This document shows, in pieces, positions 16,975 through 52,734 of a stretch of 64,000 nt of DNA. The notes beneath the pieces were generated by a model, which was given only the letters and a program-made list of their open reading frames with translations, made no database searches and was not told the DNA's origin. The position numbers were made by a program, and so were the translations under genes. Source of the DNA: Dimorphilus gyrociliatus (Eukaryota; Animalia; Annelida); contig CAJFCJ010000053.1 of assembly GCA_904063045.1 (NCBI GenBank), positions 1 through 64,000 on the forward strand, written 5' to 3'. Numbering within the stretch: the first letter of the stretch is position 1; every line of letters begins with the position of its first letter.

Positions 16975-19135
16975 TAGGTTAGGTTAGGTCTTGGGGTTAG
17001 GGATTAGCACAATCAGTACAGACTGGTAATCCCAAAAGTGCACACACACTTGTAACCAAGATTTGGCTAAGGGTTGGTTTGGCTAATGAGGAGTTGCTAT
17101 CTTAAGTAGCAATTCCCCAGCCTAAGCTGTAACTATCTTCAACAAAATCACTTACAAATTCTCCACAAGGGTGAAGAGAACCTTTATTTAGCAACTGTAA
17201 CAATTCACCAATTAAAAAATACTCACAATATTTCAGACGTATTCCTCCTTTATCAAGTGAGAGGGGAAAAGTGGCTGGTTAGATTACCACCAGACTGATC
17301 TCTGAGAGGCTTACTATATCTTAGGATAGGTACTGGTTCAATCCCACACTTTTTTCGCTACAAATCACATACTTGGTAGTCAGTAAAGCAAGTCGACCAC
17401 TGACGAAAGTTGAAATTTCAACTTGCTCCAATTGTTATGAAATTTTACACAGTGCTAGGGTACCTTAGGGTACTATGTAGCATAAGGTCTGTAGACCCAT
17501 GTTAAACTTTCAACCCCTTATATATATCAGACACACTTGTTCCTGTATGTAAGGAATGCACTGAGAGATGATTGAAGGTAGAGGTTATGGTTACATTAGA
17601 CTGCTCATGTATGATTGTCAATGGGTTGTCTTTGTGTTGATTGGGAAACCAGAAGGGACCTTTTGTTGGGGAACTTTTGTTCACTGCCAACTGTCAACCA
17701 TCTGTTCTCTCATAGAGAGGTGTCTCCCCACAAATTACCCCATTTTTTATTTTAACAATTGTTCAGAACAGGTCCCATGTATATCCAGTCTGTACCTTTG
17801 TCTCTGCTAAGGTATGTGTTGGTTCCATTATCTTAGGTTAGGGTTAGTTGTAAAGTTTCACTAATTTGTATCTTTTTAGGGGGCTATAGCTTAGGGTTAG
17901 GATATAAGAACCAGATGTGGTGTTTTTGTTGGGGAACTGTTTGTTCACTGCCAACTACCACAACCTGTTTCCCATTAAAGAGGTGTTCAATCCCTACTCA
18001 GCCAATAACTAGCCCTATTAATTTTCATTCACTGTCAATTTCTCTCTGTATCTCCAATAGGAGATTAATACCTGCAAAACTACTATCCTGATCATCCCCC
18101 ACCCAGCTATTGGCCATGGTGAGAATTGTGTCATTGCTGTTGTCCAGGCTCTCTATGTTATTCACAATAGAGAATTTGTTTTGTGGTTTATTGAAGACTG
18201 TTTTAATATGCCACCATGGGGATGGCCAACATTCTAATAGATTCAGAGTGTTGGTATTATCCTCTTGAGGTGGACCTTCAGTTCTTCCCTTTACTATAAG
18301 GCTACCCAATGATCTCCCCAGTTTCAAGGCAATAATAGGCCTAATCACCTTCAGTGGACTGTCATCATTAAGAGCACTCCAGTGGTGCTTAAGTATTCTA
18401 TTTAGTTTATACCAAGGACTTGGATGGTAGACCACTAGTGGTACTATAGTAGTACTGTAGCAACCATGATCCTCATTTAAGCCATAAGGAGTAACTGTAT
18501 TAGCCTCTTTGATGTACCTTGCTTCTAAAGTCTGTAGGGTCTTCTCTCTGTTAGGATCTTCCTCAGGAATGGAATCACAGACCCAATAAGTCATCTGATC
18601 TATTCCATGTTTTCAAAAATGATCAGAGACCAATTTATTGGATCCATTCCTCACATCCCCTTTGTGGTTGTTGATTCTATCCCTTAGAGTTCTAGTGGTA
18701 AGACCCACATACTGTATTTCACATAGGGTACATTGGATAATGTAAATTATCCAACTAGAGGTACAGTCAAAGTCTCCCTTGACTCTGAACCATTGGTTAC
18801 TGCCAGTTGATTGCCAAGTGTTAGTTTTCCTAACCTTCAGACACACTAGGCATCTCCTACCACTGCATGGTTTCATACCTTCAAACTCTTGCTTCTCAAT
18901 TTCAATCCTCTTAGTAGCTTTTAGCCATGCCTCTTTGAACATTGATTTGGTATAGCCCATATCTTTGTTTAAATTCCTAAGATCATTGAGTTGTCCCTTT
19001 GCTGTATCAATTTTTGAGCAATTTCTGAGATACCTAAGAGCTTGTGCAAATAAAATTCCTTTAATGGTGTTTTTGGGATGTGCAGACTTGGGGTTAAGTA
19101 GTCTTCTACTGTCTGTAGGTTGAAATTGATCTTTA
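16975..19135 (-). mobile_element. 5'-truncated GIY-YIG Penelope-like element, inactive copy
   Basis: Reverse complement of 42650-44312 plus 45238-45718. The ORF is broken by CGA>TGA at 18613-18615. The 3' end is CCCTAACCCCAAGACCTAACC. Confidence 0.9.
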
Positions 19136-19649
19136 AAGCGTAACCATGGATATATTCCAGTTGTTAATTAATGTTGTAATATGAAATGGTGATTACTCAT
19201 TGGAACATTTTCCAACTGTAGCAGTAAAAATTCCACTCTTTTTAACGGCTGCTACACAAAAAATATGAATAGGGGTAATTGTATGTTTATTAAACTTGTG
19301 ATAATGAAATCTATGTTATACTGAATGACACATCACCTAATGAATTATAGGGAAAAACTGGTGTTAGTCTATACTACCTGGAAAAAACCAGTCTAATCCA
19401 ATCCAATAATTGTTTTTTCAAATTACAGAATAATAGAATAATTCTTATGAACTGTTTTATAATTAAAGCTGAGGTCATGTTTAATTATTCAAAAAACAAG
19501 AATAATTAATATAAAAATGACATAATTGTTTAAATATTTGTGTTTTCAATTGTTAGGTAAAAAGTTTTAAAGTTGGAAAATTGAAAAATTGATGAGTTTT
19601 TTTTTCCTTTGGCATTTAGCTACTGCTGAACAGTTTGTAGAGTGTCAAT

Positions 19650-20642
19650 ATGAATTTCTATAGAAATTTTTTTAATTTAATTTTTTGTATTAAAGTTTCC
19701 AGTTTTTCACCAATTCAAGATTATATTTCATGTCAGGAAGCATTGACAAAAACTGAACAAGATGGATCCTACTCAATAAAACCAAGATTAAATGGGCAAA
19801 CAGCCAATGTTGTATGCAATAGAATAAATTCAACACATGGTATTGCAATGTTGAGCAACAGTAGAGAAATTGAAAAGGTATTATCAAAAACATATGAAAC
19901 TAAATTTCACATTGATAGAATTACCTATGGAAATTTTAATGATGATGATATCAAAGAATTTAAGAAGGGAATGCTAAGTTGTTCTCAAAGAATTTCCTAC
20001 AAGAATCGAGGAGCTAGTCTAATATGGCAAAAACTTTTATTTTATGATGGAACATTCTTTTCAAGCTTGAATGATGGTCAAGATGGAATATGCAAATGCT
20101 TCGTTCGAACTGTATGTGATAATAATGGTGATCCTCAATCAATTTGTACAATGACTGGAGTGAATGGGGGTAGTGAACAAACTGAGGAAGGAGAATTTAG
20201 CGTTAAAGAAGATAGCTTGCCACTAATTGAGATTCACACTGCTGATGTAGGAAATACTAATGAGGCAGTACGTTACACTTTAGAAAAATTTAAATGTACT
20301 TTTCAATTTATGACCTTTAACCTCTTTACAACTAAAAATACAACTTGCCTAAAATCTGACCAGTTGACAGCATTAAACGACAAAAATATTGCAACTTGTA
20401 TTTCAATTCCAATTGAGAATACTATTCAATTGGACAGTAATACAGAATTTGAATTTGGAGAAATTCTAACAAAATTAACATTCTCCTGCAAATCTTATAT
20501 TGAAATATTCATACAAAAAGAAACTGATAAAAAACTTATTTGTTCAATATTTGCAAACTGCAAATTTGAATGTCCAGCAACTCAATCTATACATTTTAGA
20601 ATGTTTAAATCAATGGAAATTTGTGATATTCTTTTATATTAA
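19650..20642 (+). CDS. Secreted protein with a CASPR/neurexin-IV-type fibrinogen-like domain
   Basis: SCQEAL...DGSYSIKP...VVCN, SCSQRISY, CKCFVRTVCD...LPLIEIHTADVG...YTLEKFKC. Confidence 0.6.
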   Translation: MNFYRNFFNLIFCIKVSSFSPIQDYISCQEALTKTEQDGSYSIKPRLNGQTANVVCNRINSTHGIAMLSNSREIEKVLSKTYETKFHIDRITYGNFNDDDIKEFKKGMLSCSQRISYKNRGASLIWQKLLFYDGTFFSSLNDGQDGICKCFVRTVCDNNGDPQSICTMTGVNGGSEQTEEGEFSVKEDSLPLIEIHTADVGNTNEAVRYTLEKFKCTFQFMTFNLFTTKNTTCLKSDQLTALNDKNIATCISIPIENTIQLDSNTEFEFGEILTKLTFSCKSYIEIFIQKETDKKLICSIFANCKFECPATQSIHFRMFKSMEICDILLY

Positions 20643-20940
20643 TGAAATATTACTTATCATCTTTATTTAGCTACAAAGCCTTTTTCATTAGCATAATATG
20701 TGTTATTCTTGGCATATACAATGTTTAAAAACACTTTTAAAAATATCCTCTAGAGGGCTATAACAGTTCACTAAAAATTGAACATTTCTGATGATATTTC
20801 TGATTTCAATGTCTGTAAATCATTTTCTCTTAAATAAATCAAAAAATAAATTCATAAAATTCCAATAAACTCAGCCTCTTATGACTCATCTATTGTGATT
20901 AGAAAATAGTGTCTATTTCTAAAATGCCAGCATATGTTTT

Positions 20941-22651
20941 TTACTTCTGATTAGGTTTTTGTAATGTTGAACTAGATACTAAGATCTAAGTTCTGATGAA
21001 AGTTGAATAACTTCCACCAAAGTTTCAAGAGATTCCACAATGGTATGGAATGCAAGAGTAAGAACACTCTGTACAAGCAAGACTATCTACAACTGATTGA
21101 TGAAAAATGTGTGTTGAGTTTATGTTTTAATTGTTTGATGGTTACTAAGCATAGTTGACCTACCATGATTTCGTCTTCCCCTTTGCAAAGACTCGTCAGG
21201 GTCATTTTTAGAAGATAGCTTCACTTACTGCTACCTTTGAAGGGGAGGCTAGGATCATTTCTGCAATTGTGTCCTGCCTTGCATTTTATTTTAGTGGGAT
21301 GATTGTGTTTTAGAGTTTACATGTTTGTAATTTTTATTTTCAAACAGATTTTTTTCATTGTACAATGTTTGAGTTATGTAGACTGTAAAAAGTATATTTA
21401 TATTTGTCTGATAAGTCTCATTGCAACAATGAAGAAATGCCTATGTTTAATGAATTAATTGTGAAAGTATATGGTTTTTACTTGACAGAGAAACAACAAT
21501 TACTTCAAAGAAACACTATTGTACCTTTCTTTGAACAGATAAATTATAGGAATGTATAACTCACTTTGGTTTTCTTACACCTTTTGTTCTGAAAATTTCT
21601 TCCTAATGCAGCCTGTAGAAGGTTTTTGGGTTATTTTTGTCTTTGTTTTGTTGTTTTTTGAGGCTGATTTCTTTTTATGATAGGATTTTTTTTCAACTGA
21701 TGATATGTGGCTTGTTGTTGAGTTTTTATAGGTGGTGGTTATGTAATTGACATATGTCAAGATATTGCATTTTTTCTTGAAGGGCATGTTTTACTATGTA
21801 AGTCCTTCCTGGGATATGTCTGTTGACCATCTGTTGCTTCTATATGGGAAAGTAAATACAAGGGATTTATGATGGACCTACAAATTTAATGAAGTATAAT
21901 AAATGTATATTTTTTGGTCTAAACAAACACAACATCAAAATGGACTAATATAATGTTTGTTTTCTAAAATTGCTTTTTTCTTCTTATGCTTGATAAAAAT
22001 ATTCATTTGAAATATAAACATGCAAAGAATTAATAATTTTGATGGTTGAAAGTAACACTTCTGATTAATTTTACTGTTGATTTGAAGCTTGGAGAATTGG
22101 TCTGTTTATTTTCTTTTTTCTTCCAGTTCTACTTTGTTGTTGTTGAAAGACTTCTTTACACTTGACCATAATTTCATTTGTAATCAAGTGTTGAACAATA
22201 TTTCTCAAAGAAGATATCTTTCCAGGCAGAACAGTACCATGAAAAGGATCTCCTCTTATGATGGTATTAATATCAATAATTTTTGTAAACATGTTGTTCA
22301 AGTTTTCAGATTGTGAGGTTGGTTGTTGATGGAGATCACTTTTTTTGATGTTATATTGCATAAATAATAAGCATTCATTAGTAACTCCAGTGCTTTTATA
22401 CAAAGCTTTAAAATTATCGTCAGCATCATTAATGGTGTTAAAGGGAATGTGAAGTGCTGTTATATCACTTTTTATTTTCCATTTGGATATAATTTCTTTA
22501 CAATTTTGAACAGTTAAGCCAGAAATGTTTATAATGAGAACAGTTCCAAAATAGCTGATGTTTTTTTTAACATCTTCTACCTGAAGTAAATATAAGTCAC
22601 CCAAACTTTCATCACTTAAAAGAAGTAAATTAATTTTGTTGGGAAATCACA
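20941..22651 (-). mobile_element. HHR family-1 element, copy A (SGNH-like ORF, 3' region, HHR, tail); runs into the gap
   Basis: ORF 22071-22604 is homologous to 35936-36570 and 48230-48457. Downstream blocks, the HHR and the tail are shared with 36940-37395 and 48700-49790. Confidence 0.8.
21156..21204 (-). ncRNA. Hammerhead ribozyme, minimal type I, family 1
   Basis: Minus strand reads UGACC-CUGACGA-GUCUU..AAGAC-GAAA-UC-AU-GG-UA-GGUCA. Confidence 0.85.
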
Positions 22652-23307
22652 NNNNNNNNNNNNNNNNNNNNNNNNNNNNNNNNNNNNNNNNNNNNNNNNN
22701 NNNNNNNNNNNNNNNNNNNNNNNNNNNNNNNNNNNNNNNNNNNNNNNNNNNNNNNNNNNNNNNNNNNNNNNNNNNNNNNNNNNNNNNNNNNNNNNNNNNN
22801 NNNNNNNNNNNNNNNNNNNNNNNNNNNNNNNNNNNNNNNNNNNNNNNNNNNNNNNNNNNNNNNNNNNNNNNNNNNNNNNNNNNNNNNNNNNNNNNNNNNN
22901 NNNNNNNNNNNNNNNNNNNNNNNNNNNNNNNNNNNNNNNNNNNNNNNNNNNNNNNNNNNNNNNNNNNNNNNNNNNNNNNNNNNNNNNNNNNNNNNNNNNN
23001 NNNNNNNNNNNNNNNNNNNNNNNNNNNNNNNNNNNNNNNNNNNNNNNNNNNNNNNNNNNNNNNNNNNNNNNNNNNNNNNNNNNNNNNNNNNNNNNNNNNN
23101 NNNNNNNNNNNNNNNNNNNNNNNNNNNNNNNNNNNNNNNNNNNNNNNNNNNNNNNNNNNNNNNNNNNNNNNNNNNNNNNNNNNNNNNNNNNNNNNNNNNN
23201 NNNNNNNNNNNNNNNNNNNNNNNNNNNNNNNNNNNNNNNNNNNNNNNNNNNNNNNNNNNNNNNNNNNNNNNNNNNNNNNNNNNNNNNNNNNNNNNNNNNN
23301 NNNNNNN
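22652..23307. other. Assembly gap (656 N)
   Basis: Run of N. Confidence 1.
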
Positions 23308-23600
23308 TAATGGTATGTAGATATGTCATTGAACAGGAAAGTGTGTTATAATATATTTTGAATGTTTTATTCACATGGTTCATATTAGTTTGAAGAATAA
23401 GGAGTCAAAATCACATTTAAAATACCCAGTTAAATGAACATCCCCTACAATTGCTGATGATTTTAAAATTTTTATGTACAAATTCTGATATACAGTATCA
23501 TAATACATAGCACTTTCAATATGATATATATTAAAAAAAAACCTGAAGAAGTGAATTCCCTATTGGAATCCTTCAACATCTCTGTAGGTGTAGGTTAATA

Positions 23601-23657
23601 GACCCTGATGAGTCCTTGGTCATAAAAATAGAGAGGAGGACGAAACCGTGGTAGGTC
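23601..23657 (+). ncRNA. Hammerhead ribozyme, type I, family 2
   Basis: GACC-CUGAUGA-GUCCU..AGGAC-GAAA-CC-GU-GG-UA-GGUC. Confidence 0.9.
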
Positions 23658-24735
23658 AAGTAGGTAGGAAAAAAATTTAAGAAAAAAATTTTTGAAAATT
23701 TTTTGAAAAAATTTTTTCTGTTGGAAATTGTTTTAAAATGGATTTTGGTGTGTTTTTTCTTTGACTACTTCCCAAAATCAACTGGGACTCTTGAAATGTG
23801 AGAATCTGTTTCTCTTTTTTGATTTAATCAAAAAAAAAACCTTTCCAAACCCCAACAAGTAAAGAGAATGTGGGATGAGAGGAGCAAATACATAAGCCTT
23901 AATCAATGACTAAAAACAAAACTTTTTCCATGAGATTGACTTTTTTCATTCAAAATTAAATTTTTGACTTTAGCTTTCAAAATTTTTTCTTTTTACTTTA
24001 AAAAGGGATAAAGATTCTTAAATATGTGACTGTGGTGTAATTAACATTTTTGGTATATTGTTTGAGTTTGTTGTTTGATAATGTCTTGCTTTAAAACCAA
24101 ATGATGAAATTCTTTAGAGTCAGTATACACTTATGGTGATTTTAAATTTCTGATGGTAGTAGTAATATATCTTTGTACATTTTTGATTACTTTTGTAAAA
24201 GCTTGTATAGTTTTGTACATTTTTGTATTTTTTAAAATATTGCTTAAAATAAGTTGTTGATGTTTTTATCATGGTGATTTTAAATTTTCTCATGTTTTAG
24301 CTTGAGTATGAGTTTTTGCTTGAGTATGAGTTTTAGCCTGAGTTTGAGTTTGTTTTTAGTTTGATTGTGAGTTTAAATTAAAATTTGAGTTTAATTTGTG
24401 TATTAAACTGGTTTTAATTTGATGTAAATATGGTTAGTAGTTTACAAATTTCTTTGTGATCTTTATAAATGTTTCTATATTCTTCCCAAATCTTTTACAA
24501 TTCTAAAATTATAAAAATCCCTATTAGTAGTATATATTTTTATTAGTTGAATATATAGTTTGTAGAGAACATTTTAAATATTCTCAGTAACTAACCTTTG
24601 TCTTAAGCTGAAATTTAAAAAAATACTTTACTTATCAATCTACTTCCAGTATAAACACCACCATATTTTACATTAAAACATCTCACCAATTTTAATATCA
24701 CTCACTTCAAAAACTCACATATATTCTCTTCGTTC

Positions 24736-25139
24736 TTTTCCAATCCATTCATTAGCCAAAACAATGAATCATAACTGGCTCAAATAAATGAATGTTGGAA
24801 AAGACTCTTTCAACTACCAATACCATAAATTGTAATCTTAATTCACTACATGGAATAATCCTTCCATTCCAGTAACAAACATAAATCATAAATCAATAAA
24901 GGAATTAGGAATTAAACCTCTCTATTCAGCATACAAAACACTCTTCCCAATCCATTCATTAGCCAAATCAAACAATCTGGAATTAACTAAATGAATGTTG
25001 GCAAGAAACTTTTACAAACAAAAACAGATTACCTAAGGCTTTCACACATTTACTTACAAATAATTTATTTAACCCACTTTCCAATCCATTCATTAGCCAG
25101 AACAACCTATCACTTGGCAAAGTAAATGAATGTTGGAAA
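24736..25139 (+). ncRNA. Three repeated ~62-68-nt hairpins (24736-24803, 24943-25005, 25078-25139)
   Basis: Each has a CCAATCCATTCATTAGCCA 5' arm and an AAATGAATGTTGG 3' arm around variable loops. Repeated at ~62620-63030. Confidence 0.55.
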
Positions 25140-25804
25140 ATATAATACAAGAAAAACAGTTTAGTCTTCAAACAATATTATTTAATAATTTTCAAATTAA
25201 CAATCCTCTAATCTTTAGCCATAAAATTAAATTAACCATACTTTCTCATAATACAACATATGTATCACACTTCATTCATTTACACTCACTTATTTATATA
25301 CTTTCAATTAATTAACCAATTCCTTACACATACTTAATTCATCAACTAGCCATAAATAATAATACAATTCATATTTATTTTTTTCACTTTTTCAATTTTG
25401 AATTTTTACTTTTATTTAAACTTTTATTGTTATTCCAATCCTGGTTGCTACTATTTACCCAACTTATTTTATTTTATTCTATATCACTTTTCTCATTTTT
25501 AGGTCTGCAATTTTTGTTTTTTCTGTCTTTGCTGTTTTCCAAACTGCCAGTATATATATCCCCTCAATTTACTGTTATTATTCCTTACACTTTGATTCAA
25601 GCCACAGATGCTTTCTTTAATAACTTGTTAATTTAAAAAGTGTTAAACTATTTTGGTTTCTTATTTTAATTTTTAATTATTTTTCAATTTAATTCCAAAA
25701 TTTACCTCACAAGAATCTTTATCAACAAACAAATAAATAAATCAAAAATCTGGAGAGAAACTTCTTATTAAGATTCTCAAACCTCTCTTTCATGCAGCTT
25801 AGTA

Positions 25805-25863
25805 GACCCTGAAGAGTCCCAGGTTTAAAAATTTAGTAGAAGGGGGACGAAACCAGGTAGGTC
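25805..25863 (+). ncRNA. Hammerhead ribozyme, type I, family 2 (CUGAAGA variant)
   Basis: GACC-CUGAAGA-GUCCC..GGGAC-GAAA-CC-A-GG-UA-GGUC. Confidence 0.8.
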
Positions 25864-26053
25864 AAGTAGGTAGGAAAAAAATTTAAGAAAAAATTTTTGA
25901 AAATTTTTTGAAAAAATTTTTTCTGTTGGAAATTGTTTTAAATGTCGATTTTGGTGTATTTTTTCTTTGACTGCTTCCCAAAATCAACTGGGACTCTTGA
26001 AATGTGAGAATCCTGTTTCTCTTTTTTGATTTAGTCAAAAAAAACCCTTTGCA

Positions 26054-26082
26054 AACCCTAACCCTAACCCTAACCCTAACCC
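26054..26082 (+). repeat. Interstitial telomeric repeat (TAACCC)n
   Basis: About 4.5 perfect units starting where other copies of the element read GCAAACCCC. Confidence 0.9.
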
Positions 26083-26440
26083 AGAACTTATACAAGCTCA
26101 AACTACATCTTCACACCAAAAATCAACTTAAAAAAGCTATTAGAAGTTGGAGTTTTTTTCTCTATATAATGATAGTATTTTTTTTTAAACGTTTTTAAAA
26201 AACAACAGCCAAACTAGAAACATTTTTAGGTCATTTTTTACAGATCTATAATCAGCAAACAAAACTGTATATTTCCATAACTTATGAACTCAAAATTTTT
26301 TTGGGGACCCCTGTAACCTAACCCTGTCAAAAAAAAACCTTTTCCAAACCCTAAATTTTTTGACACTTTTTGTAAGTGGAATACATGCAGTTTTAATGTT
26401 GTGGCATGTTGTTATATGTTAAATGATTAAATGAAGATAA

Positions 26441-27205: not shown

Positions 27206-30200
27206 AAATAACAACATATGTGCTTGTTGCTAACTGTTTATCTTCTTGATGAAAGAAATCGCAAACTGTATATTAATAAAGATAAGGAGAAATATGAATA
27301 AATATAAAAATCATAATTTTTCTTGCGCAATCATTATTTCTTATTGTCAAAAGAAATATTGTTATTAATTGAAAAATTAAAATATTCATTATTTTTTTGG
27401 AAAATCTAAAGCGTATTTGAGATGTATAAGAAAACATTATGTGGTTATATAGGAAATATTTCTATGAATTATTAATATAAAAGTTCAAAATTTTGTTTAG
27501 AAAGATTAATAATCAATCTTTCGATTGAATATGTCTTCATTCAATTTATGAAAAATTCAAAGGGCTTCCACAGTTCATTTTTTGTTCCTTATTTCTAAAA
27601 TGTCAGAAATATAAAAAACATTCTTTCAACAGGAATACATATGGAATATTAATCAATGAGTGTTTCTTTTCTTTGTTCTCTTGTATTGATTTAAACACAG
27701 CAAGTAGAATATATGGTATTTTTGGGTTGAGATAAAAAGCATTCACTTAAGATCAGAAAAAACTCTCAAACATACAGCATTCTTAATTATTAATATTTAA
27801 TAATAATGAATTGCTTCAGTTAACAAGTTAAACATCAGAATATAGAGAGAAACCATAAGGAAATGGCAGGAAAAATTGGACACAGTAAATTTTGCAAGAC
27901 CAACTTTCAATAAACAATCAAAATTGGTTGTCCCCTTTAAAGTAGTTTGTTTAAAGTTTTATAGAAAATAGTCATCAATTAATTACAGAATATAATTGAG
28001 ATATCATAGTACATGTCTACAACATTGGTTATATTTAACATGCTTGAACTCTATTATTTTATGCAACTTATACATGTACATCTTAAAAATCTATGCAAGA
28101 AAATGCTATAACATTGGCCAAAGAGAGTTTCATTAGTCAGCTTTAAGGCTCATCTTTAATTACCAATAAAGGTTTGGTCAAGTTATAATTTAATTAACTT
28201 GCCTAGGTGTGGCCTAACCCTAACCCAAGTCCTAACCTAACTCTGCTATTGAACTCTCATATTGTTACTTGCTTAAGTATTATTATTTTGAATAAACCGT
28301 TTTAATTTAAACATTTGTTTAAAGGTTCGAGTAGAACCAGTATTGTTATAACTTTCAAGCGCATAGATTTTGCCAAGCAAGAGCAGTACAATAGTTATAA
28401 AATAGAAGGATATTGGGAAATTAAGGGTGATGGCAAGAGTTTTGGGAATGCATGGAAAAAGAGTTTGGGCACATACAAAGATAAAAAAATTATACTTGAT
28501 TTATCAGTGTCGATTCATTACAACTAACACAACTCAAAAATCCTAACCAAAACACAAGAAGGAAATAAAGATTTTAATACTTGATATATTCCTATCTATA
28601 GACTTAAAGTTTTGCATGCAAGTTCAGTATTTATTCATTAATAAATACAAAGGATAATATCTACTGTTGCCTTATTACCTGACCAGAATGATTTATGAAA
28701 ATCATTATACAATTTCAAGAGCCATAAATTTTTATTTTGGAAATATGATACAAAACATGCTCAACACATTGGAGAAAAATCAACATATCTTATATCTGTC
28801 ATCAATAACTTATTACTTGCCTTTCAATTGTTAACAATCAATGGAAGGAAAAGTAAAATATTTACTCAATTGAAAAACTAATTCTAGTCAAATTCTACCA
28901 TTTTTTACTATACAAAAGATTTTTACCAAAGCTTAGATTTACTTGGTCAAAGGATTTGTACTTTGCTGTATTATAATTGTAGGAATTTCTGCTTCTTCAG
29001 AGCAGTACTCGTCCTTTCCAATCATTTATCAATGCACCAAAGTACTCAAACAAAATAGAACTTTTCAAGTTCATCCACAAATAGTCTTAATAAATGTAAT
29101 TTCGGTAGAAATAATTCAACAAAATACCAGTATTTCATTTAAAGAATATCTATTGAGTAAATGAGTTTCTAGTTCTAAACAAATAAGTTTAAACAATCAG
29201 TTAACAGTTAAGAACTGAACTGCCAAATTGGAGAAATGTATTTTCTTTTATACATTTCCCAAAGCTTGGGTTCAATTTATCAAAAGATTGCATATGTCAC
29301 AAAAACATAATCCCTAAACAAAGGCTATATAGTCAGCACATGTTGCCACATAACACATCTGTCCCATTAACATCTGATAATAGTTAAGAAAAAACAACTT
29401 TGACACATTTCTTTTTAAAGTGCTAAAGTTAACTCTACAAAATAAAAGTCTTTCAAAAGTTCCACCATTATAATTCATACAAAATAGTAGTTATTTCTAT
29501 AGTTGCACCATTCTAATTCCTATAAAATAGAAGTCTTTCTAAGGTACCCTAATATCTAAAGTCTAAGCATTCATATATCATTATATCTTAGTGCACAGGA
29601 TTACAAAGTTGAAATGTAACAGTCTCATAATGCACATATAACAAAAACAAAAAAAACTATTACATCACTTATGGCTAACATGTGGCAGTGCAAAAACAAG
29701 CCTGCCTGTTCCTCATCTGTTTTTGAATAAGATGTAACAAGTTTAATATGCATTTTATCTATATTGTTTGTTAATTCCATAATGGCACCATCTGTTATGG
29801 TCAAAGAATCTATTTCCTGCAAAATAAAGGTGTTTCTAAAGTTCTAGAATCTAATTCTACTAATTAAAAGTCTTTCTAAAGCTCCACAATTATAATTTGT
29901 ATGACATAAAAGTGATTCTATAATTCCCCCATTATAATTGCTACAAAATAAAAGCCTTTCTAAAATTCTATAATATCTAAAGTCTAAATATCACAGAGTG
30001 TACGACTTTTAATCAATAATAGACCCAGAAAGCATCCAGAAAGCAAAAACACACCCTTGGTAATATGATACAAATATCATAACTCATACTGTGAAAGTCT
30101 ACAGAAAGTGAAAAATTAAATATGAATGATTTTGGAACTATAATAAAGAAAGGAGTTAAAAATTTAAATATTAATCCTCGTTTTTCAAAAAAATTTTTGT

Positions 30201-37984: not shown

Positions 37985-38023
37985 CCTAACCCTAACCCTA
38001 ACCCTAACCCTAACCCTAACCCT
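37985..38023 (+). repeat. Interstitial telomeric repeat (TAACCC)6 at the end of the HHR family-1 tail
   Basis: Perfect repeats begin where sister copies read AAAAACCTAATCAGAAG. Confidence 0.92.
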
Positions 38024-38297
38024 GTCAACAAGAACTTCATTCATTGAATTATCCTACAAAAATGTAAGTTATTCAGTTAATATTTGTGTTATGTGTTTTT
38101 AAAAAATATTTGGCAGCAGTCTCTATATAGATTTACAAAATCTATAGATAATTAGTTGGATTTTAAGGCCATTTCCATGTTGGCAGCCATTTTGATTGGC
38201 ATGCAAGGCGAATATTTTAATTATTTCAGTGTTATTTAAATAACATTGACATGCTCTCAGTATATTCTTTAGATATTATTATGTAGATTAATATGCT

Positions 38298-40477: not shown

Positions 40478-40500
40478 ATAAATCCAGGATTCTTCAACAG

Positions 40501-42445: not shown

Positions 42446-42464
42446 TAACCCTAACCCTAACCCT

Positions 42465-43748
42465 ATACTCATTGTGTGGAGAAAGGAGAGTAGTGATACT
42501 GTAGGAGAGGATGACAGGTTGAGAGAGTTCTGGAACTATCTTAACAACAGAAATGAGGGTATTAGTCTAACCAGATCTGAGGCTGGTAACACAACCATCT
42601 TTCTAGATTTGGAGATTCAACTCAATCCTCTAGTGTTCAAAACTCATTTTAAACCTACAGACAGTAGAAGACTACTTAACCCCAAGTCTGCACATCCCAA
42701 ACACACCATTAAAGGAATTTTATTTGCACAAGCTCTTAGGTATCTCAGAAATTGCTCAAAAATTGATACAGCAAAGGGACAACTCAATGATCTTAGGAAT
42801 TTAAACAAAGATCTGGGCTATACCAAATCAATGTTCAAAGAGGCATGGCTAAAAGCCACTAAGAGGATTGAAATTGAGAGGCAAGAATTTGAAGGTATGA
42901 AACCATGCAATGGTAGGAGATGCCTAATGTGTCTGAAGGTTAGGAAAACTAACACATGGCAATCAACTGGCAGCAACCAATGGTTCAGAGTCAGGGGAGA
43001 CTTTGACTGTACCTCTAGTTGGATAATTTACATTATCCAATGTACCCTATGTGAAATACAGTATGTGGGTCTTACCACTAGAACTCTAAGAGATAGGATC
43101 AACAACCATAAAGGGGATGTGAGGAATGGATCCAATAAATTGGTCTCTGATCATTTTCGAAAACATGGAATAGATCAGATGACTTACTGGGTCTGTGATT
43201 CCATTCCTGAGGAAGATCCTAACAGAGAGAAGACCCTACAGACTTTGGAAGCAAGGTACATCAAAGAGGCTAATACAGTTACTCCGTATGGCTTAAATGA
43301 GGATCATGGTTGCTACAGTACTACTATAGTACCACTGGTTGTCTACCATCCAAGTCCTTGGTATAAACTAAATAGAATACTTAAGGACCACTGGAGTGCT
43401 CTTAATGATGACAGTCCATTGAAAGCGATTAGGCCTATTATTGCCTTGAAACTGGGGAGATCATTGGGTAGCCTTATAGTAAAGGGAAGAACTGAAGGTC
43501 CACCTCAAGAGGATAATACCAACACTCTGAATCTATTAGAATGTTGGCCATCCCCATGGTGGCATATTAAAACAGTCTTCAATAAACCACAAAACAAATT
43601 CTCTATTGTGAATAACATAGAGAGCCTGGACAACAGCAATGACACAATTCTCACCATGGCCAATAGCTGGGTGGGGGATGATCAGGATAGTAGTTTTGCA
43701 GGTATTAATCTCCTATTGGAGATACAGAGAGAAATTGACAGTGAATGA
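42465..43748 (+). CDS. Penelope-like RT C-terminal region + Cys-rich linker + GIY-YIG endonuclease (5'-truncated)
   Basis: ILIVW..FLDL..FKTHFKPTD..SAHP..LRYLRNCS, then PCNGRRCLMC and IIYIIQCTLCEIQYVGLTTRTLRDRINNH..HF..LEARYI..GLNED. Confidence 0.9.
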   Translation: MLIVWRKESSDTVGEDDRLREFWNYLNNRNEGISLTRSEAGNTTIFLDLEIQLNPLVFKTHFKPTDSRRLLNPKSAHPKHTIKGILFAQALRYLRNCSKIDTAKGQLNDLRNLNKDLGYTKSMFKEAWLKATKRIEIERQEFEGMKPCNGRRCLMCLKVRKTNTWQSTGSNQWFRVRGDFDCTSSWIIYIIQCTLCEIQYVGLTTRTLRDRINNHKGDVRNGSNKLVSDHFRKHGIDQMTYWVCDSIPEEDPNREKTLQTLEARYIKEANTVTPYGLNEDHGCYSTTIVPLVVYHPSPWYKLNRILKDHWSALNDDSPLKAIRPIIALKLGRSLGSLIVKGRTEGPPQEDNTNTLNLLECWPSPWWHIKTVFNKPQNKFSIVNNIESLDNSNDTILTMANSWVGDDQDSSFAGINLLLEIQREIDSE

Positions 43749-44312
43749 AAATTAATAGGGCTAGTTATTGGCTGAGTAAGGATTGAACACCTCTTTAATG
43801 GGGAACAGGTTGTGGTAGTTGGCAGTGAACAAACAGTTCCCCAACAAAAACACCACATCTGGTTCTTATATCCTAACCCTAAGCTATAGCCCCCTAAAAA
43901 GATACAAATTAGTGAAACTTTACAACTAACCCTAACCTAAGATAATGGAACCAACACTTAACTCAGCAGAGAAGAAGGTACAGACTGGACAGACATGGGA
44001 CCTGTTCTGAACAATTGTTAAATAATAAAGAATGGGGTAATTTGTGGGGAGACACCTCTCTATGAGAGAACAGATGGTTGACAGTTGGCAGTGAACAAAA
44101 GTTCCCCAACAAAAGGTCCCTTCTGGTTTCCCAATCAACACAAAGACAACCCATTGACAATCATACATGAGCAGTCTAATGTAACCATAACCTCTACCTT
44201 CAACCATCTCTCAGTGTATTCCTTACATACAGGAACAAGTGTGTCTGATATATATAAGGGGTTGAAAGTTTAACATGGGTCTACAGACCTTATGCTACAT
44301 AGTACCCTAAGG

Positions 44313-45237
44313 ATATATATATCAAAGAGTTAGTTTTGATCCAAAAAAATCAGTGATGTGACAAAAATGTCCCAAATCTGGGCCGTTTAGGAGTTTCGTT
44401 ATGCGTCATCCTAGACGTTTCAATTTTGTTGGAGGTGATAGAGCTCGAAAAGAGCTTTTCACTGATATGCTACACGACCATGTAGCTCTTACGGTTCAGG
44501 AGTGGCTGAGCTTCGAAAATCGAAAATTTTCCGAGTTCGGGTAGAAAAATAAAAATATTTTTTTCTATCTTTCCGACGTAGGGGCAAGCTTGGATTCAAG
44601 TTTGAAAGCAATCCGACGATTTTGAAAAATTGGCCTTCACTGAGGCTCTGGACTTGTAAAGATTTCGCGAAAATCATTAATTTTCTAAGTTCATTGTCAT
44701 GTTAATTACCTGTATAAACATTACATTCGCCTGGGTACTTAGAAAGATTTTGGAAAAAATATTTTCCGAAAATATTCTAAGTCCAGCCTAACACAGTGTT
44801 AGGTTTTGGACTTGGAAAAATTTCGACTGAAAAAAGTCGATAAATTTTTCAAAAATATTCTAAGTCCAAATTGGAGGTGAAATCACCCCTTATCTTAGAT
44901 TCAGTTATATTTCATGGTGCGGTAATGAATAGGGCTCTGGACCGCCCCATGCAAATAGGATTGGCCATATATGTACAGAGGAAGGAACATAGAATTGAAT
45001 CTAGGTCTTCTTCTGTTACATTTTATGAAAAGTGACTTACCTGATTGTTATACCTGCGATTTTTGAAAGGTTACCCTCTAATTACTATAGAACGTAGGGT
45101 CGAGATACTCGTAATAGAGTCTAAGGCTGCCAGTCAGCCATCCTCACCTACCACCGTTAACTTCAAAGCTCCATAGCTCCGCAACCGCTGGGCCGATTTC
45201 GTTCAAATTTTGCACAGTTGCTCAGTTCAATTAGATC
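44313..45237. repeat. CpG-rich segment absent from the minus-strand PLE copy
   Basis: Present between ...CCCTAAGG and TAGCACTGTG... only in the plus copy; visibly richer in CG dinucleotides. Confidence 0.6.
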
Positions 45238-45739
45238 TAGCACTGTGTAAAATTTCATAACGATCAGAGCAAGTTGAAATTTCAACTTTCGTCAGTGGTC
45301 GACTTGCTTTACTGACCACCAAATAGGTGATTTGTTGCGAGATAAAGTGTGGGATCAAACCAGTACCTATCCTAAGGTATAGTAAGCCTCTCAGAGATCA
45401 GTCTGGTGGCAATCTAACCGGCCACTTTTCCCCTCTCACTTGATAAAGGAGGAATACCTCCGAAATATTGTGAGTTTTAATCTGGTGACATTTTGTTAGT
45501 TGCTAAATACAGGTTCTCTTCACCCTTGTGGAGAATTTGTAAGTGGTTTTGTTGGAGATACAGTTACAGCTTAGGCTGGGGAATTGCTACTCAAGATAGC
45601 AACTCCTCAACAGCTACACCAACCCTTAGCCAAAGCTTGGTTATAAGTGTGTGTGCACTTTTGGGATTACCAGTCTGTACTGATTGTGCTAATCCCTAAC
45701 CCCAAGACCTAACCCTAAGAAGGAATACAGGGATAGAAT

Positions 45740-48179
45740 TAACAAAACCCTGACCAGAAAACCTCCAACCTATAGTATTGATGATTGGGTACATATTAGG
45801 AGAGAAGATATTCACAGAGGTATGGAAAGGATACCAAGCTTTAAATGGAATGGACCATATAAGATAACAGCTGCAGATGCAACCAAATGTTTGTATGAAG
45901 TGGAATTGGAAGATGGCAAAAGAAAATATTATCATGCAACAAGATTAAGATTGGCTAATAACCAAGCAAGAGATGAGACAGTTAATCATGTTGGTACAGA
46001 AAATAGAAGAAAACCATCAAGGTTATTTCCAATTAGAGAGATAATACCTCTAATAATAATCATGATCATATTTATGCTACTACCATTGACAATGGCAAAC
46101 CAATTCACAACTGGTGCTAACATCACTTTAGAATTTGTACCTCCTATTCAATACTGCAATGGACAGCAACTACAGCAAGCATTTGATTTAGCAGATCAAC
46201 CTGAATGTCAAGTATACAACCAACCTGTGACCAAAATATTAGCCAATGTCTATGAAATAAACACAGCTGATTTAGAGGTTGAAGCAGTAAAATGCATGGT
46301 GAGGAAGAGAGAGAACTTCTACACTTATTATTTTTTTGGTTCAAAGAAGCACAGAGTTGAAAAATTCATTGTTACATTGTCAGAAGAAGAATGCAGAAAG
46401 ATGTATCAAAAGAAGAAAGCTTACTCTGGGCAGAAGCTTTATAACAAAGGAAATATTTGGACTTATAATGAAAGGAAAGGAACAGCCTATAAATACCCAT
46501 CAACAACTTTAGTTATAGAATATACTACAATTATACAAGTTGGAAAAGCATACTGGTTACCTTATCAAAACTATGTAACAACAGATCTTGATTTTGTTGA
46601 AGATTGTCCAGTCCAACAAGATTTTGCAGAACTATAAATTCAGTTATTATCCTCCAATTGTTAAAAGATAATAGAATCATGGGACAAGAATCACCATGGA
46701 GAGTGATTTCAAGAAGGATATCATGTATAAAGTTTGCAGGATATTACTCCTGTCCTGAATATACTATTATGGATAAATACTATAAAAATAGTTTCATAGA
46801 AGGATTTGGAGGGCCAGGTACAAGAGTTCTGGTTCCTATTGAAGAAAACCAACTTCTGAGAACAGATTTATCAACATCTGGGTACCAAGATGATGAAATG
46901 CTAAAGAATGCAGTATTCAAGCTGGCATCAGAAGAGGAAGTAGTTTATTTGAAAAAGTACCAGTCAAAGAGTTTATTGCTAAGGAATGCTCTTCAGAAAG
47001 ACCATGAAAGTATACCAACATTTAGAGATTGGTATAGGGAAGGAGATAAAACATAGCATATGATGATTAAAATCCCTGGTCTTGCTGTAGTCAGAACATA
47101 CCAATTAAAGCAACCTATAGCACAAGATGTATGGAGTATACAAAACACATATATTGGAAAAATGTTAAAGAAAGTAACCTTGCCCATTGCAAAGGAGTCA
47201 AGAAAAGACAAGTACAAAGTTACCCACAAATTTGTTGAAGAAAAATTGTTGCCAAAAACAGATGTTTGGTTTCAAGGACCTCAAGGGAAGCAGTTTAAGT
47301 TGACTAAAAGAAAATTAGGATATCTCCTACTAGAAAGAGTTGCAAAATCAGAAGAAGAAAAAGAGATGAAAAAAAAAATCACCATAGTGGAACAAGGGCA
47401 GCATTTCTAAAATCAGTTGATAGAAATTTCATCAACTTACAAGAAACCTTTAACCAGCTCTCAAGAATGTTATGTAGAGCATTTGTGCAGAGGGATAGGA
47501 TGATAACTCCACTAAGTCCTATCTCACCTCAGTTACCTACAGTTTTATCTGAAGAGAAAGGAACACATAGCACTTGGCTGGGAGACCTCACAACAATTAA
47601 TTATTGTACACAACACAAATCTATTCAGATCATATGTGACTTGAACATTATTGTGAAAGATGGTAAATGCTCAAAGCAACTATTGGCCAAGTATAAGGAG
47701 TTAATATTCTCAGTGGAACCCATAACCCATCAGATACGTGAAATCAGCTTAAAAGATATAATATATGGCAAATGTAACACTGAAAAAAATCTATTCAAGG
47801 TAAAAGATAATCCTTTGGAAAGCCAGAGTAATAATGAACAAATAAGCTTGATCAATATTCAGATCAACTAAATTATGCAAAACAAATTGGCATTAACCCT
47901 GCAGTAACTAAATCTAGAAGATATTTTATGGCTTGGACAACGAAACCACTACAAACTATTATCAATTTCCTTATTCCTGAAACAACAACTGGTGCAATTG
48001 GAATGATATTGTATTGGATAAAGATGAAAGGATTACATAAAAATGTAACACAAAGAATACTAAACAGATTCAGAAAAACAAATGACATTAAATCCATTGA
48101 GGAAGGCCAACCCTTAAGAGTTGTCAGCAGCAGGAAAGGTCAAGTTATTATTGCCAATGTTGAACCATCAGTGGAATGA
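45740..48179 (+). mobile_element. LTR-retrotransposon fragment: integrase C-terminus plus frameshifted env-like class III glycoprotein
   Basis: YSIDDWVHIRR..KWNGPYKI..YEVEL..YHATRL, then a hydrophobic signal, Cys-rich ectodomain pieces and a C-terminal hydrophobic segment, split over five ORFs. Confidence 0.7.
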
Positions 48180-48189
48180 TGCTTTAAGG

Positions 48190-49870
48190 AGATAATAATC
48201 AACAATTTCTACCAGAAAGGTTAAAAAAAATGTTTACAAATATTGTTTATATCAATGGCATTATAAGAGGAGATCCTTTTCATAGAAGACTCCAACAGGA
48301 CAAGATATCTCCTTTAAGAAATATTGTTCAACATTTAATTTTTAATGAGATATTAGTCAACACTAAAGATGTGATGGAACAACAACAAAGAAGAACTGGA
48401 AGAAGAAGATTAAACAGACAAGATATTCAGGCTATAGAGGAACAACACAATGAGTGAAATTAACAAACCTATCAAAACTAAATTTCAATCTCTGTACATT
48501 TTATATAAACACTTTGATATTTCTCTAGTTTAAAATAGTAATATTAGCATAATATAACTATGTATTTATATCAATGCAAAATTGATTAGGTGTGTGACAC
48601 ACTGGAATGCCAGAGGCTGACATATCACTTCTTATATAATACCAAATGTGTCTAGGCTTGGGATACTAAAACTTTTATGTAATACCAGATACTTGTCAAG
48701 ATAAACTGACATATCTTAGGATATGTCAATTACATAACACTCCTCTATATAAGCTACAAGGTCTATCAAACATCATCACTTCAAGAAAATTCTCAGAACA
48801 AGAAGGACTGCTTTCTACAAAAACTCTGTTTAGTGATTCAACATCTACATACAACAAAAGATCACTTTTCTACATCAAACAACTCTGAGAGAAAAAACAA
48901 AGTAAGCTATATGTTTGTTTGTTCATTTGTGAAATTAAAGATACTATAATGTTTTACATTTATGTATCTATTTGTTTATATATGTTCAGGTGACTTTAAG
49001 ATGTTATAGTTGATTTTCATCACTTTCATTTCTTTCATTAACACTATAAGACCTGTCAGACAACTTGGATTATATATCTTGCTGTTTAACAGTTCAAAAA
49101 TTGTTCAATGAGGAACAGCACCAAATGAAAATTATAAACTCTGGCATCTTTTGTAAACATTATATACACATTGTACCTCCATTATACCTAAACATACCAA
49201 TAGGACAACAAAAAAAAACATTAGGCAAATAACTATATATCAGACCAAAGAAAATTTCAATAACTGAAAAGTAAGCAACTAGATATTACAAAACAAAAGT
49301 CATCTTATTGACAAGCATTACAAAGAATCAACTTCTATGGTTGATATTCATCCATACATATATACACGTACAAATACACATACAATTTCAACATCCATAC
49401 AACAAGAACATTCTTGCAAGGAAGGATTCAATTATAAAATTGGTCCTTTCCTCCCCTTCAAGATAGTTCTTAGGTTATACTATCCTCTGAATTGACCCTG
49501 ATGAGTCTTTGCATTAAAAGGGGAAGACGAAACCATGGTAGGTCAACCATACTTGGCAACCATCTAGATTAATATATCCTAGGTTAAACATACTATTGCA
49601 ATTTAAAACCAAATCAAAAACAAACAAACAGACATAAATTGATTAGTGATGGGAAGAGTACTTGTTTTAAAATGTACAATAAGTTCTTACTCTTGCATTC
49701 CATTTCATTATGGGATCTTCTGAAAGTTTGGTGGAAGTTATTTGACTTTCATCAGAACTGAGACCTTAGTGTCTAGTTCAAACCTATATATAAACCCTAA
49801 CCTAACCCTAATCTATACTGGATTGGCAAACCCTAACCCCAAGACCTAACCAAGACCTAACCCTAATTTC
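48190..49870 (+). mobile_element. HHR family-1 element, copy C (ORF 3' end, HHR, tail, telomere-like repeats)
   Basis: IIRGDPFHRR..RRTGRRRLNRQ ORF at 48230-48457, shared 3' blocks, HHR at 49492, tail ending AAACCCTAACCTAACCCTAA. Confidence 0.8.
49492..49546 (+). ncRNA. Hammerhead ribozyme, minimal type I, family 1
   Basis: UUGACC-CUGAUGA-GUCUU..AAGAC-GAAA-CC-AU-GG-UA-GGUCAA. Confidence 0.9.
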
Positions 49871-50874
49871 TTTATACATCTTTAAATGTTTTTATCTAAA
49901 TGTGTTTAAGCCAAAGTAAGCAGAGTATTCAACTATATTCAACTTTGCTTTTTAATTTTGTTGATTTTTGTTATGATAATGACATTTTGTTTAGAAACTC
50001 AAAATTTAACCTTCAGCCGCACCCATGTTGTAAGAGCAATAGTAGACTAGCCATATTTGATAAATATTTCACATTAATATGAATTCTATACAATCATAGC
50101 TAGAACCCTGCTTCAATGCACATTGAAATCGCAGTAAATTTAAGTTAATTTTATAATGTTACAATTTCTGAGCTCTATGGGGAAAGTAATTCAATGTCTG
50201 CCAGAGATTAGGTCTAAATTTCTAGTTAACATTTTAAAACTCTAACTCAAACTCTTATATTCTCTCTTTTATCTACAATTCTAAAATATGACAAAAGTTT
50301 GTTTTTTTAAACTTTGCTTTTATTTTTTAAGAAAAGACATTTAGAATCTTTTTCATGCACAGTTATCATTAAAATTTAATGTTAAATCTGCTTCTGCATG
50401 AGCGTGCAATGGAATTACAAAAAGATTTCCTGGATATTGAGCAACTGCGACAGTTGGTGTAGCTTGCTTGTTCTCTCTATATTGAAATACTAAATTAAAA
50501 TATCACTTTAAATGGAATTATACTTTTACCAGTGCAAATTCCATATTCAGATCACTGTCATCCAATCCAAATTCTCTTTCAGCAAGTTCAGCCAATAGAT
50601 CATTTAGCAAAGGATAAGACAATGCCTGATGAATGAAAAGTAGTATGCAGCAAATGGCTATTACAGTCTTCATCCTGGAATATTTACTTTACTTTGTAGA
50701 ATTTAGTTTAGCAATTGAAACTACTGAAAATAAATTTAATATGTCAATGATTTCATGTTAAAAACAGGTTTATATATAAAATTTTTAAATATTTCACCTT
50801 ATTCATAGTTAAAAACCCTTTTCAAATTGAAAGTGCAGGTTCCTACCCATATTGTATGTCTGTCCTATTTTTCC

Positions 50875-51110
50875 CTTTATTCACTGTCAATCTCTCTTTG
50901 AATCTCCAGAAGGAGATTAATCCCTGCAAAGCTGTCATCCTGGGTTAGGGTTAGGGTTAGGTAGGGTTATATGTATGTTTGAACTAGACACTAAGATCTG
51001 AGTTCTGATGAAAGTTGAATAACTTCCACCAAACTTTCAGAAGATCCCATATTGGAATGCAAGAGTAAGAACTTATTGTACAATATAGACCAAGCACACT
51101 TCACATCATA
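50875..51110 (-). mobile_element. Composite: PLE ORF 3' fragment + telomeric repeats + HHR family-1 tail
   Basis: 50878-50941 reverse-translates to QDDSFAGINLLLEIQREIDSE*; GGGTTA repeats at 50942-50969; then the reverse complement of the family-1 tail. Confidence 0.85.
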
Positions 51111-51169
51111 AGTCCATTGATTTTTCTTTTAATTTGTATTATTGTTTTAAGGTAGTTATTTATTGCAGC

Positions 51170-51460
51170 ACAGGTTGTCTTCACCCTTGTTGAGAATTTG
51201 TGATTGTGCTTCTGTTGGAGATACAGTTACAGCTTAGGCTGGGGAACTGCTACTCAAGATAGCAACTCCTCAATAGCTACACCAACCCTTAGCAAAAGCT
51301 TGGTTATAAGTGTGTGTGCACTTTTGGGATTACCAGTCTGTACTGATTGTGCTAATCCCTAACCCCAAGATCTAAACTTTTTGTGGAACTTATTCAACTG
51401 TCATCAGAACTCAGATCTCAATGTCTAGTTCAAACATAATTAACCCTAACCTTACCCTGT
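51170..51460 (+). mobile_element. PLE 3' non-coding end fused to a family-1 tail fragment, ending in TAACCC-like repeats
   Basis: 51170-51372 matches 45510-45712, then ...TCATCAGAACTCAGATCTC..TCTAGTTCAAAC and TAACCCTAACC. Confidence 0.75.
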
Positions 51461-51696
51461 GTAGGATACAATAGAGGCATAGTGAATTTAGTATTAATAG
51501 AGGTATACAAAGAAGCTTTATATCTGGTTCATAATTGTTGTGCAAAGTATTATAGCATGTTCAATACTACTCAATAGTAAAAAAGATTTACAATTTGAAA
51601 ATACAAATATAGAAAAAGGTCAAGGACTTCTGTTTCATATGAATTAGAATGGTGCAACAATAGAAATACTTGTATTTCAAAGGATGCAAAAAAAAT

Positions 51697-51904
51697 GGGG
51701 GCAGGTGCGAACGTACCTGTTAGCAAATATTTCCAACCATGAAAACATTTTAGGAAAGGGTTAGTTTGAATATTTGGATGAATTTATTGTTAGAGGGGCT
51801 CCAATTTAGGGTTAGGGAATATAAAAAACAGAGATATTAACACTCAATTTCAGATATATTAAGGTAGGCTTCAACTGGCCATGGGTACGTTCGCACCCCC
51901 ATGC
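51697..51904. mobile_element. MITE derived from the 33182 MULE family
   Basis: GGTGCGAACGTACC at the left end and GGTACGTTCGCACC at the right; flanking duplication AAAAAAAAT (9 bp, extendable to 14). Confidence 0.8.
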
Positions 51905-52734
51905 AAAAAAAATGTTGGCTTTTTTTAAGAAATATTATTTTAAGTTTACATTAAGATATATTGAAATTTTGAAAGTTTTCTACTGTCAATATTCTTCAGG
52001 TTTATTTTAAGCATAACTAGTTTAAAACTAGTTTTACAGTACTAGCTTAAAAATGTTAGGGTTTGGTAAGGGTTATGGGTTAGGCCACTCACACAACTCT
52101 GGTAATGTTTTTGGTTAGAGTTAGGGGTTAGAGTTACAGGGGGGTTCCTTTTTAGTTGAGTATGCCAACTTGTATATATATGCCTAACAAATAATTTACT
52201 AAAGTCTTTTCATCTGCTGTCATCTGTAGGCTGAGATATTGGAGAAAGAAAATTAACGATTAAAAATTTTTTTCTTTTTTTTTCAATTTTTTTTTTTAGA
52301 AATTGAACAATTTGAAGGTGTACAGTAATAAATTGGATTCAAAATTTAGAAATTTTGAAGCAACCTATATGTTTGAGGTGTAAAATAGGAAAAAATGATG
52401 TTTTTTTCTACGTTTTGACCTCTAGCTCAGAACCCACACCCACAATTTTTGTTATTTTTTGAATATAGCCTTATAACATATTACTAAAACACATATCAAA
52501 AATTAAAAAAAATTGTGGGCTTGGAATTAGAGATATTAAGCATCGAAGTTTGTGCTTGATAGAATGGTTTTTGACTAACCCATGTTTTATAAAGAAAATG
52601 TTTATTGTAATCAATGTTTTTCAGATTATAGAAACAAATATATTATTAATACTGAGCAAAATGGCACCTAACAAACTGTTAGGAATACTATAAACTGGTT
52701 TTTCCCTAACAATCCACAACTTGTTTACATACAT

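Follow-up and report, generated by a model that had tools for sequence, protein, structure and literature searches.

In Bombyx, TRAS and SART are endonuclease-bearing non-long-terminal-repeat retroelements that are specific for telomeric repeats and lie in them in fixed orientation. Among Penelope-like elements (PLEs), Terminons carry reverse-complement telomeric repeats at their 3' ends, include telomere-truncated copies and form head-to-tail chains with captured genes (PMC6431247). This attachment to telomeres underpins the proposed kinship of PLE reverse transcriptases (RTs) with telomerase. In the literature we searched, telomeric repeats were linked only to endonuclease-free PLEs, and the genome paper of the annelid Dimorphilus gyrociliatus mentions neither PLEs nor telomeres. 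Here we analyze a cluster of PLE copies and telomeric tracts in bases 1-64000 (the window) of D. gyrociliatus contig CAJFCJ010000053.1 (109,277 bp; assembly GCA_904063045.1). The animal has telomeres of the ordinary TTAGGG type, and its genome is compact (74 Mb). We read this locus as a mosaic in which retro-copies of a single Penelope-type system were joined by priming from telomere seeds, and put the probability of this reading at roughly 60%. It is supported by a large excess of telomeric tracts, a consistent strand rule, recurrence on other contigs, telomere-seeded events at internal sites and the endonuclease residues kept by the RT-bearing element.

Self-comparison of the window defined four families: P, a PLE with a GIY-YIG endonuclease; E and R, which carry hammerhead ribozymes; and the short element S. 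A search with TTAGGGTTAGGG, allowing at most one mismatch, returned 26 matches in the window compared with 0.21 expected. Once merged, the matches form 21 tracts of 12-43 nt. Tracts occur at all the junctions named in an earlier note on this DNA: at the 3' ends of R1 (26052-26083), E_A (37982-38024, seven repeats), E_B (49799-49867, a 45-nt P-tail fragment included) and an E tail (51440-51457), and at 50941-50962, where the G-rich strand lies on the plus strand beside the minus-oriented copy E_D. Wherever a tract touches a recognised repeat family, inverted copies included, its C-rich strand is the element's sense strand. The same rule, proposed before, holds for all eight junction tracts that lie beyond built-in tails (R1, E_A2, S1, E_B, the P fragment, E_D, the E fragment and S2). 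End alignments revealed in each family a fixed last stretch with a telomere-like seed, past which most terminal copies run on into canonical CCCTAA units, in register with the seed. The built-in seeds themselves are non-canonical (ACCTAA in E, CAAACCC in R), whereas the adjoining units are canonical, and the tracts are therefore not slippage copies of the seed. Reverse-complement telomeric repeats are found at about 12 of 16 terminal 3' ends of E, R, S and P tails on three contigs.

The 5' side shows the same repeats. P 5' ends adjoin tracts at 42467 and 50940 in the window, at 9069 of a locus on contig 059 (L003) and at a full-length copy starting at 10146 of a locus on contig 067 (L001). That truncated copies abut telomeric tracts is thus borne out at 42446, at 50941 and at L003 9026-9069. 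The tract at 42446 had been interpreted as a 5' truncation; this tract (42445-42466) does abut truncated P1 and is, in addition, the 3' tail of an S element. Many tracts end proximally in CCCTG before unrelated sequence and two end in CCCAG (ends at 38024, 51457 and L001 10145, 15355 and 15485). Such ends could reflect the start of repeats on a complementary DNA (cDNA) end or a duplicated target boundary.

P is present in the window as P1 (42467-45719, plus strand), P2 (16981-19137, minus strand) and P3, a 206-nt 3' piece (51170-51378, plus strand). Its tail ends in CCCTAACCCCAAGACCTAACC. P1 is truncated just past the YIDD motif of the RT (residue 404 of 831), and its tail occupies 45694-45719. 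Its open reading frame (ORF; 42414-43748) encodes the RT thumb, a CX4CX2C linker and a GIY-YIG domain with CCHH, and about 2 kb of 3' region follow the ORF end at 43748. P2, also 5'-truncated, lacks 925 nt of the 3' region and retains its built-in tail (16981-17002); no target duplication was seen by eye around it. P3 spans the last 206 nt of P; immediately after it come an E tail truncated on its 5' side (51385-51440) and a short tract, the whole covering 51170-51457 on the plus strand. No RT other than P was found within the window. The earlier note had suggested a search for a full-length RT, and an exhaustive search returned DgyrCDS14716 (P0004, 831 residues), which is 99% identical to the window ORF from its residue 404 on. 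A full-length copy of P lies at L001 10146-15344. RVT_1 and GIY-YIG matches lie in one ORF, in which ADKG, YIDD and CX4CX2C are present. All invariant residues of the endonuclease are kept, and judged by these residues the enzyme is apparently intact.

We compared P with endonuclease-bearing PLEs with a Zn-finger linker of the Neptune/Nematis type (PMC8557442). Both have a single RT-endonuclease ORF with a DKG motif, a CX2-5CxxC linker and CCHH within the GIY-YIG domain, and in both 5' truncation and tandem partial copies occur. P differs in that its YHP-type module lies after the endonuclease and not before it, in having no hammerhead and in carrying telomeric tracts on both flanks. Its closest relatives are 31-49% identical and are unnamed metagenome or Logan proteins. 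The YHP-type module usually precedes the endonuclease but follows GIY-YIG in P0004 and in the relatives P0006, P0014 and P0174; in P0001 and P0002 it is located between the RT thumb and the endonuclease. Since the order is shared with relatives at 31-49% identity, it is a clade feature. One relative from another organism (L005; Logan SRR23372230, 42% G+C; 49% identity) has an ORF1 and an RT-endonuclease ORF, with several CCTAACC motifs within 360 nt past the stop codon. Two telomere-like seeds are also found inside P itself, at 43870-43938 (17835-17903 in P2), 120-190 nt past the stop codon. Beyond them the 3' region differs among copies by a 925-nt indel and, in L001, by an insertion of the element T described below; the 3' untranslated region of P may itself be a copied chain.

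E copies end at 37988 and 49798 on the plus strand and at 20951 and 50963 on the minus strand, in addition to the 56-nt tail piece at 51385-51440. E_A (32913-38024, plus) is 5'-truncated, contains two hammerhead-tail modules (37108-37164 and 37735-37791) and ends in the seven CCCTAA repeats described above. Its ORF is interrupted at about 33180-35933 by a Mutator-like (MULE)/FLYWCH transposon, which has a FLYWCH ORF, GGTGCGAACGTACC motif arrays at both ends, a 9-bp duplication (GAAATGATG) and a 99% identical copy in L003. E_B and an adjoining P-tail fragment (48193-49867, plus) comprise a hammerhead at 49490-49549, a degenerate tract at 49799-49813 and a 45-nt piece of P tail with telomere-like units to 49867. 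E_C (20951-22651, minus) carries the unknown E ORF, has its hammerhead at 21152-21207 and loses its 5' part to an assembly gap. At 50876-51150, read on the minus strand, an E_D tail is followed by a tract of 3.5 repeats (50941-50962) and by truncated P, represented by 65 nt that match the end of its ORF. The E ORF is conserved among three copies and returned no Pfam family and no SGNH signal in the Pfam and Atlas searches. We thus dropped SGNH/GDSL as a candidate for it, the best lead being a weak ribosomal L10-like match with a score below 0.9. The earlier note named GDSL esterases among the accessory ORFs of Athena/Terminon elements; here neither GDSL/SGNH nor DEDDy domains were detected (Pfam E up to 5, Atlas search).

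R is a 2.7-kb non-coding unit at 23308-26055 that is repeated at 61181-63977. R1 (23308-26083, plus) has hammerhead-plus-tail modules at both ends (23597-23662 and 25801-25868) and a CCCTAA tract of 4.5 repeats at 26052-26083. R2 (61181-63977, plus), which lies outside the range of the earlier note, is 97% identical and likewise contains two hammerheads. The 600-nt element S is found at 41847-42445 and as an inverted copy at 52137-52734, or 52116-52734 when its tract is counted in. S1 (41847-42466, plus) ends in GGAACCCCCCTG followed by three TAACCC repeats and directly abuts truncated P1, and S2 (52055-52734, minus), 97% identical, has degenerate telomeric units at its 3' end.

Hammerheads were scored with a covariance model built from the window copies, alongside a core-motif scan. 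Exactly eight sites in the window score 73-91 bits, the next best reaching 13 bits; four of them are in the two R copies and four in E copies, and two further sites are found in L003. Their helices are paired in 98% of cells, with two compensatory pairs in stem II between the families. Rfam reported no hammerhead at gathering scores, and with E up to 5 a single 23-bit match at E=2.2. The ribozymes are of type I with an intact core, and stem III is the short near-palindrome ACCAUGGU, the minimal, dimer-forming kind known from PLEs. Cleavage is predicted at GUA|GGUC, 199 nt (R) or 207-260 nt (E) upstream of the telomere-like seed. Our model detected no hammerhead in S in the window, and none was found with the model, the core-motif scan or Rfam in the window copies of P or in the full-length L001 copy. 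Hammerheads had been assigned to the Penelope-like segments as a whole; the eight are real, but they belong to E and R and not to the GIY-YIG element. E and R resemble retrozymes and PLE pseudo-long-terminal-repeat units in carrying a type I hammerhead whose stem III is short and near-palindromic, in the two ribozymes that bracket a unit and in having no RT of their own. They differ from retrozymes in that their genomic copies end 3' at a telomere-like seed, roughly 200 nt downstream of the ribozyme, and are joined there to CCCTAA units. Unit starts that follow tails look alike at 37384-37400, 23853-23866, 38025-38037 and L001 10146-10170 (TCAGAAGTAAGGAG, CAACAAGTAAAGAG, TCAACAAGAAC and, in full-length P, ...CTGTCAACAAAAC), and may represent a shared 5' end.

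Several of these pieces are arranged in a co-oriented chain at 41847-49867, which consists of S, P1, a foreign retroelement fragment, E_B and the P fragment. The foreign fragment (45720-48192, plus) is multi-copy, is cut at both ends and reaches from the tail of P1 to the 5' end of E_B. It encodes an integrase-like C-terminal end, recognised by eye, followed by env-like ORFs. Other copies continue differently on both sides, and no matching flanks are present elsewhere in the window; the fragment is therefore not a split insertion target. Nested insertion explains this arrangement less well than do template jumps or serial copying onto a free end of DNA. We considered Dingle as a name for the fragment but found no PDB or pairwise support and left it unnamed.

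Between convergent element ends lies a non-repeat stretch with a spliced gene on the minus strand (49868-50875), whose exons, extending to 50476 and from 50530, are separated by a 53-nt GT..AG intron. The gene encodes an 83-residue secreted-type peptide with a signal-like N-terminus and several cysteines. Three sequencing runs (X2-X4) show high depth at 50310-50746 on the minus strand together with the 53-nt GT..AG joint, and judging from this joint they may be transcriptomes. Contigs from X2 and X4 also contain a P tail truncated at 45638 with telomere-like units directly before it. Contigs from another run, X1, cover 48193-49491 with 4 differences and 49822-51008 with 2 differences in 1187 nt, and so cross two junctions, that at 49867 and the tract at 50941. 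At 51440, runs X1 and X2 hold a form of the tract with one extra TAACCC unit; either the tract varies in length or the assembly differs. Two further ORFs at 39161-41772 were considered as Terminon cargo. They are single copy, without homologues and with a weak OTU match only, and we left them as host-like DNA.

Equivalent junctions are found elsewhere in the genome. In L001 a C-strand tract directly precedes the 5' end of full-length P, whose built-in tail is followed by three CCCTAA units and then by a 100-nt fragment that holds a further tract; the two tracts on either side of P could be a duplication of about 16 nt or two caps. In L003 an R tail and a telomere-like stretch are followed by the 3' region of a 5'-truncated P, the junction lying at 9026-9069. 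Since these junction types recur on contigs 067 and 059, the pattern is not peculiar to the window. Smaller events were also observed. A second R copy in L003 contains a 19-nt telomere-like insert with a 7-bp duplication (TCTCAAA) that is absent from the R copies in the window. In the window, an element T (28018-28396, plus) has about 290 nt replaced by a 25-nt telomeric filler that resembles the P tail (28212-28240), whereas the 640-nt T is intact in three other copies, with intact copies present on two other contigs. A further tract, at 51805, is internal to a miniature inverted-repeat transposable element (MITE) derived from a MULE. Together, these three cases indicate that short tracts arise at internal sites in this genome, and thus tracts are no proof of a former terminus. 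Interstitial telomeric sequences inserted during double-strand break repair are described in PMC2246262. The 28212 filler is alike in being a short stretch at an internal repair site; it differs in resembling the P tail, and many of the tracts here flank retro-copies.

The comparison with Athena/Terminon elements is accordingly mixed. As in those elements, 3' ends carry reverse-complement telomeric repeats, a hammerhead motif occurs in the 3' region, short telomeric stretches truncate copies on the 5' side, and pieces form chains with a captured gene. In contrast, the RT here is fused to GIY-YIG, whereas Athena/Terminon RTs have no endonuclease; the repeat is of the TTAGGG type; and the hammerhead lies 199-260 nt from the repeats on RT-less elements, not immediately upstream of them. 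In the window we found neither a giant unit nor DEDDy, GDSL or Rep ORFs. The earlier proposal of a Terminon-like system therefore stands for the seeds, the caps, the head-to-tail chains and gene capture, whereas the Terminon traits of a lost endonuclease, a hammerhead next to the repeats, enzymes as accessory ORFs and giant size are not borne out. TRAS and SART share with P an endonuclease and a fixed orientation relative to telomeric repeats, and belong to a different RT clade with another type of endonuclease.

How could such a mosaic have formed? P would supply RT and GIY-YIG activity as the autonomous member, while the hammerhead-bearing E and R, which have no RT of their own, and the short S would be mobilised in trans. 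Each RNA would end in a short reverse-complement telomere seed that may pair with a G-rich telomeric 3' end, which the Penelope RT would then extend. The cDNA would often stop early, and its end could gain new TTAGGG units or serve the next RNA, leaving co-oriented chains of truncated pieces with short tracts as joints. We infer the pairing, the priming, the source of the 3' end and the mobilisation of E, R and S in trans from this anatomy. In this respect the system would operate as Athena/Terminon does. As P retains its endonuclease, a chromosome tip is not required as the primer end. Most likely, the junctions in this window were made at internal nicks or breaks and were then shuffled by inversions and by the MULE insertion.

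Several observations weigh against seed-primed joining. E_C, R2 and P3 have no tract at their 3' ends; E_C runs 10 nt into the next unit and then into A-rich DNA. The 5' ends of P2, E_A and E_B are plain junctions without a tract. No RT was found for E or R and P carries no hammerhead, so that their partnership with P is assumed. X1 possibly derives from the assembly's own sample and would then not be independent support. Finally, the sequence left behind is the same whether priming occurred at a break, at a nick made by the endonuclease or at the end of a chromosome, and the junctions are thus indistinguishable one by one.

The closest alternative is stricter and takes up the earlier idea of a former chromosome end: a chromosome end, natural or healed, would have offered its G-overhang for building the chains unit by unit, and this terminus would later have been internalised and rearranged. 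Co-oriented chains of truncated, capped units speak for it, as does a gene caught between convergent arrays, which has been described for Terminons; the 109-kb scaffold is also small, unplaced and rich in transposable elements, and the distal sides of both arrays face an assembly gap. However, the cluster is located 17-52 kb into the scaffold with genes on both sides and inside it, and orientation changes at five or more points, in agreement with the several flips noted before. The longest tract measures 43 nt, with no long terminal array, the P endonuclease looks intact, and telomere-seeded insertions with target duplication or deletion occur at internal sites of the genome. A former terminus is thus not borne out, and we consider it unlikely. 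Still less probable is that the tracts are inert 3' tails, chance microsatellites or parts of unrelated MITEs, carried along by ordinary endonuclease-driven Penelope insertions to which telomeric pairing is irrelevant. The MITE-internal tract at 51805, copies that integrated without tracts and the L003 micro-insert, which shows that RNA can carry repeats along, are in line with this. Yet P copies on three contigs, truncated as well as full-length, have tracts at their 5' ends too, tract units are canonical while the seeds differ, and the feature is common to four unrelated tails. Chimeric joining of repeat-rich reads during assembly or scaffolding is hardly credible: there is a gap within the studied region, and repeat families at 25-40 times the word depth of their neighbours break short-read contigs, but X1 contigs span both 49867 and the tract at 50941 and differ there at 2 of 1187 nt, contigs 067 and 059 repeat these junction types, and two runs hold the one-repeat length variant at 51440.

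Beyond seed-primed joining at this locus, we tentatively suggest, as a possibility we would not yet favour, that an endonuclease-bearing annelid PLE lineage with a working GIY-YIG domain uses telomeric repeats as primer or target and mobilises hammerhead-bearing partners through shared seeds. It would act at chromosome tips and at internal breaks, where it would seed interstitial tracts, and would represent a living intermediate between endonuclease-bearing PLEs and Athena/Terminon. For the telomere-joined system itself, the present analysis adds an internal, rearranged example together with two internal micro-events. If such a lineage exists, endonuclease loss would not be a precondition for telomere use, and the lineage would offer a tractable system for seed-directed priming as well as a concrete source of short interstitial telomeric tracts and of gene capture between retroelements.

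The window forms the first 64 kb of its scaffold and is AT-rich (G+C about 28%). Genes lie on either side of the cluster and within it: an ANF-receptor ORF is located at 11.5-14.2 kb, more ORFs follow beyond 56 kb, and the ORF at 19650-20642 is an annotated gene with identical coordinates on CAJFCJ010000053.1, a second gene being in agreement. In exact look-ups, neither eight window ORFs nor the ANF-receptor ORF matched any record. The assembly gap (22652-23307) is a stretch of Ns. At its left edge (22652) minus-strand E_C reads into the Ns, with a TGA codon in the E frame at the edge; at its right edge (23307) lies plus-strand sequence upstream of the first R1 ribozyme. Both the left array, on the minus strand, and the right one, on the plus strand, turn their 5' sides toward the gap, and consequently no element or frame is continuous across it. 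Two long ORFs called across the gap are strings of X, and we rejected them as artefacts of the Ns. The first orientation change, which falls at this gap, may be a scaffolding join. A G-strand tract at 39074-39092 (plus) adjoins no recognised element. A short family with an internal telomeric tract, flanked on either side by related sequence, is found at 7897-7915 and at L001 15455-15485. A repeat family of about 125-300 nt has ten or eleven copies interspersed at 53234-60656, around an ORF at 56378-57574.

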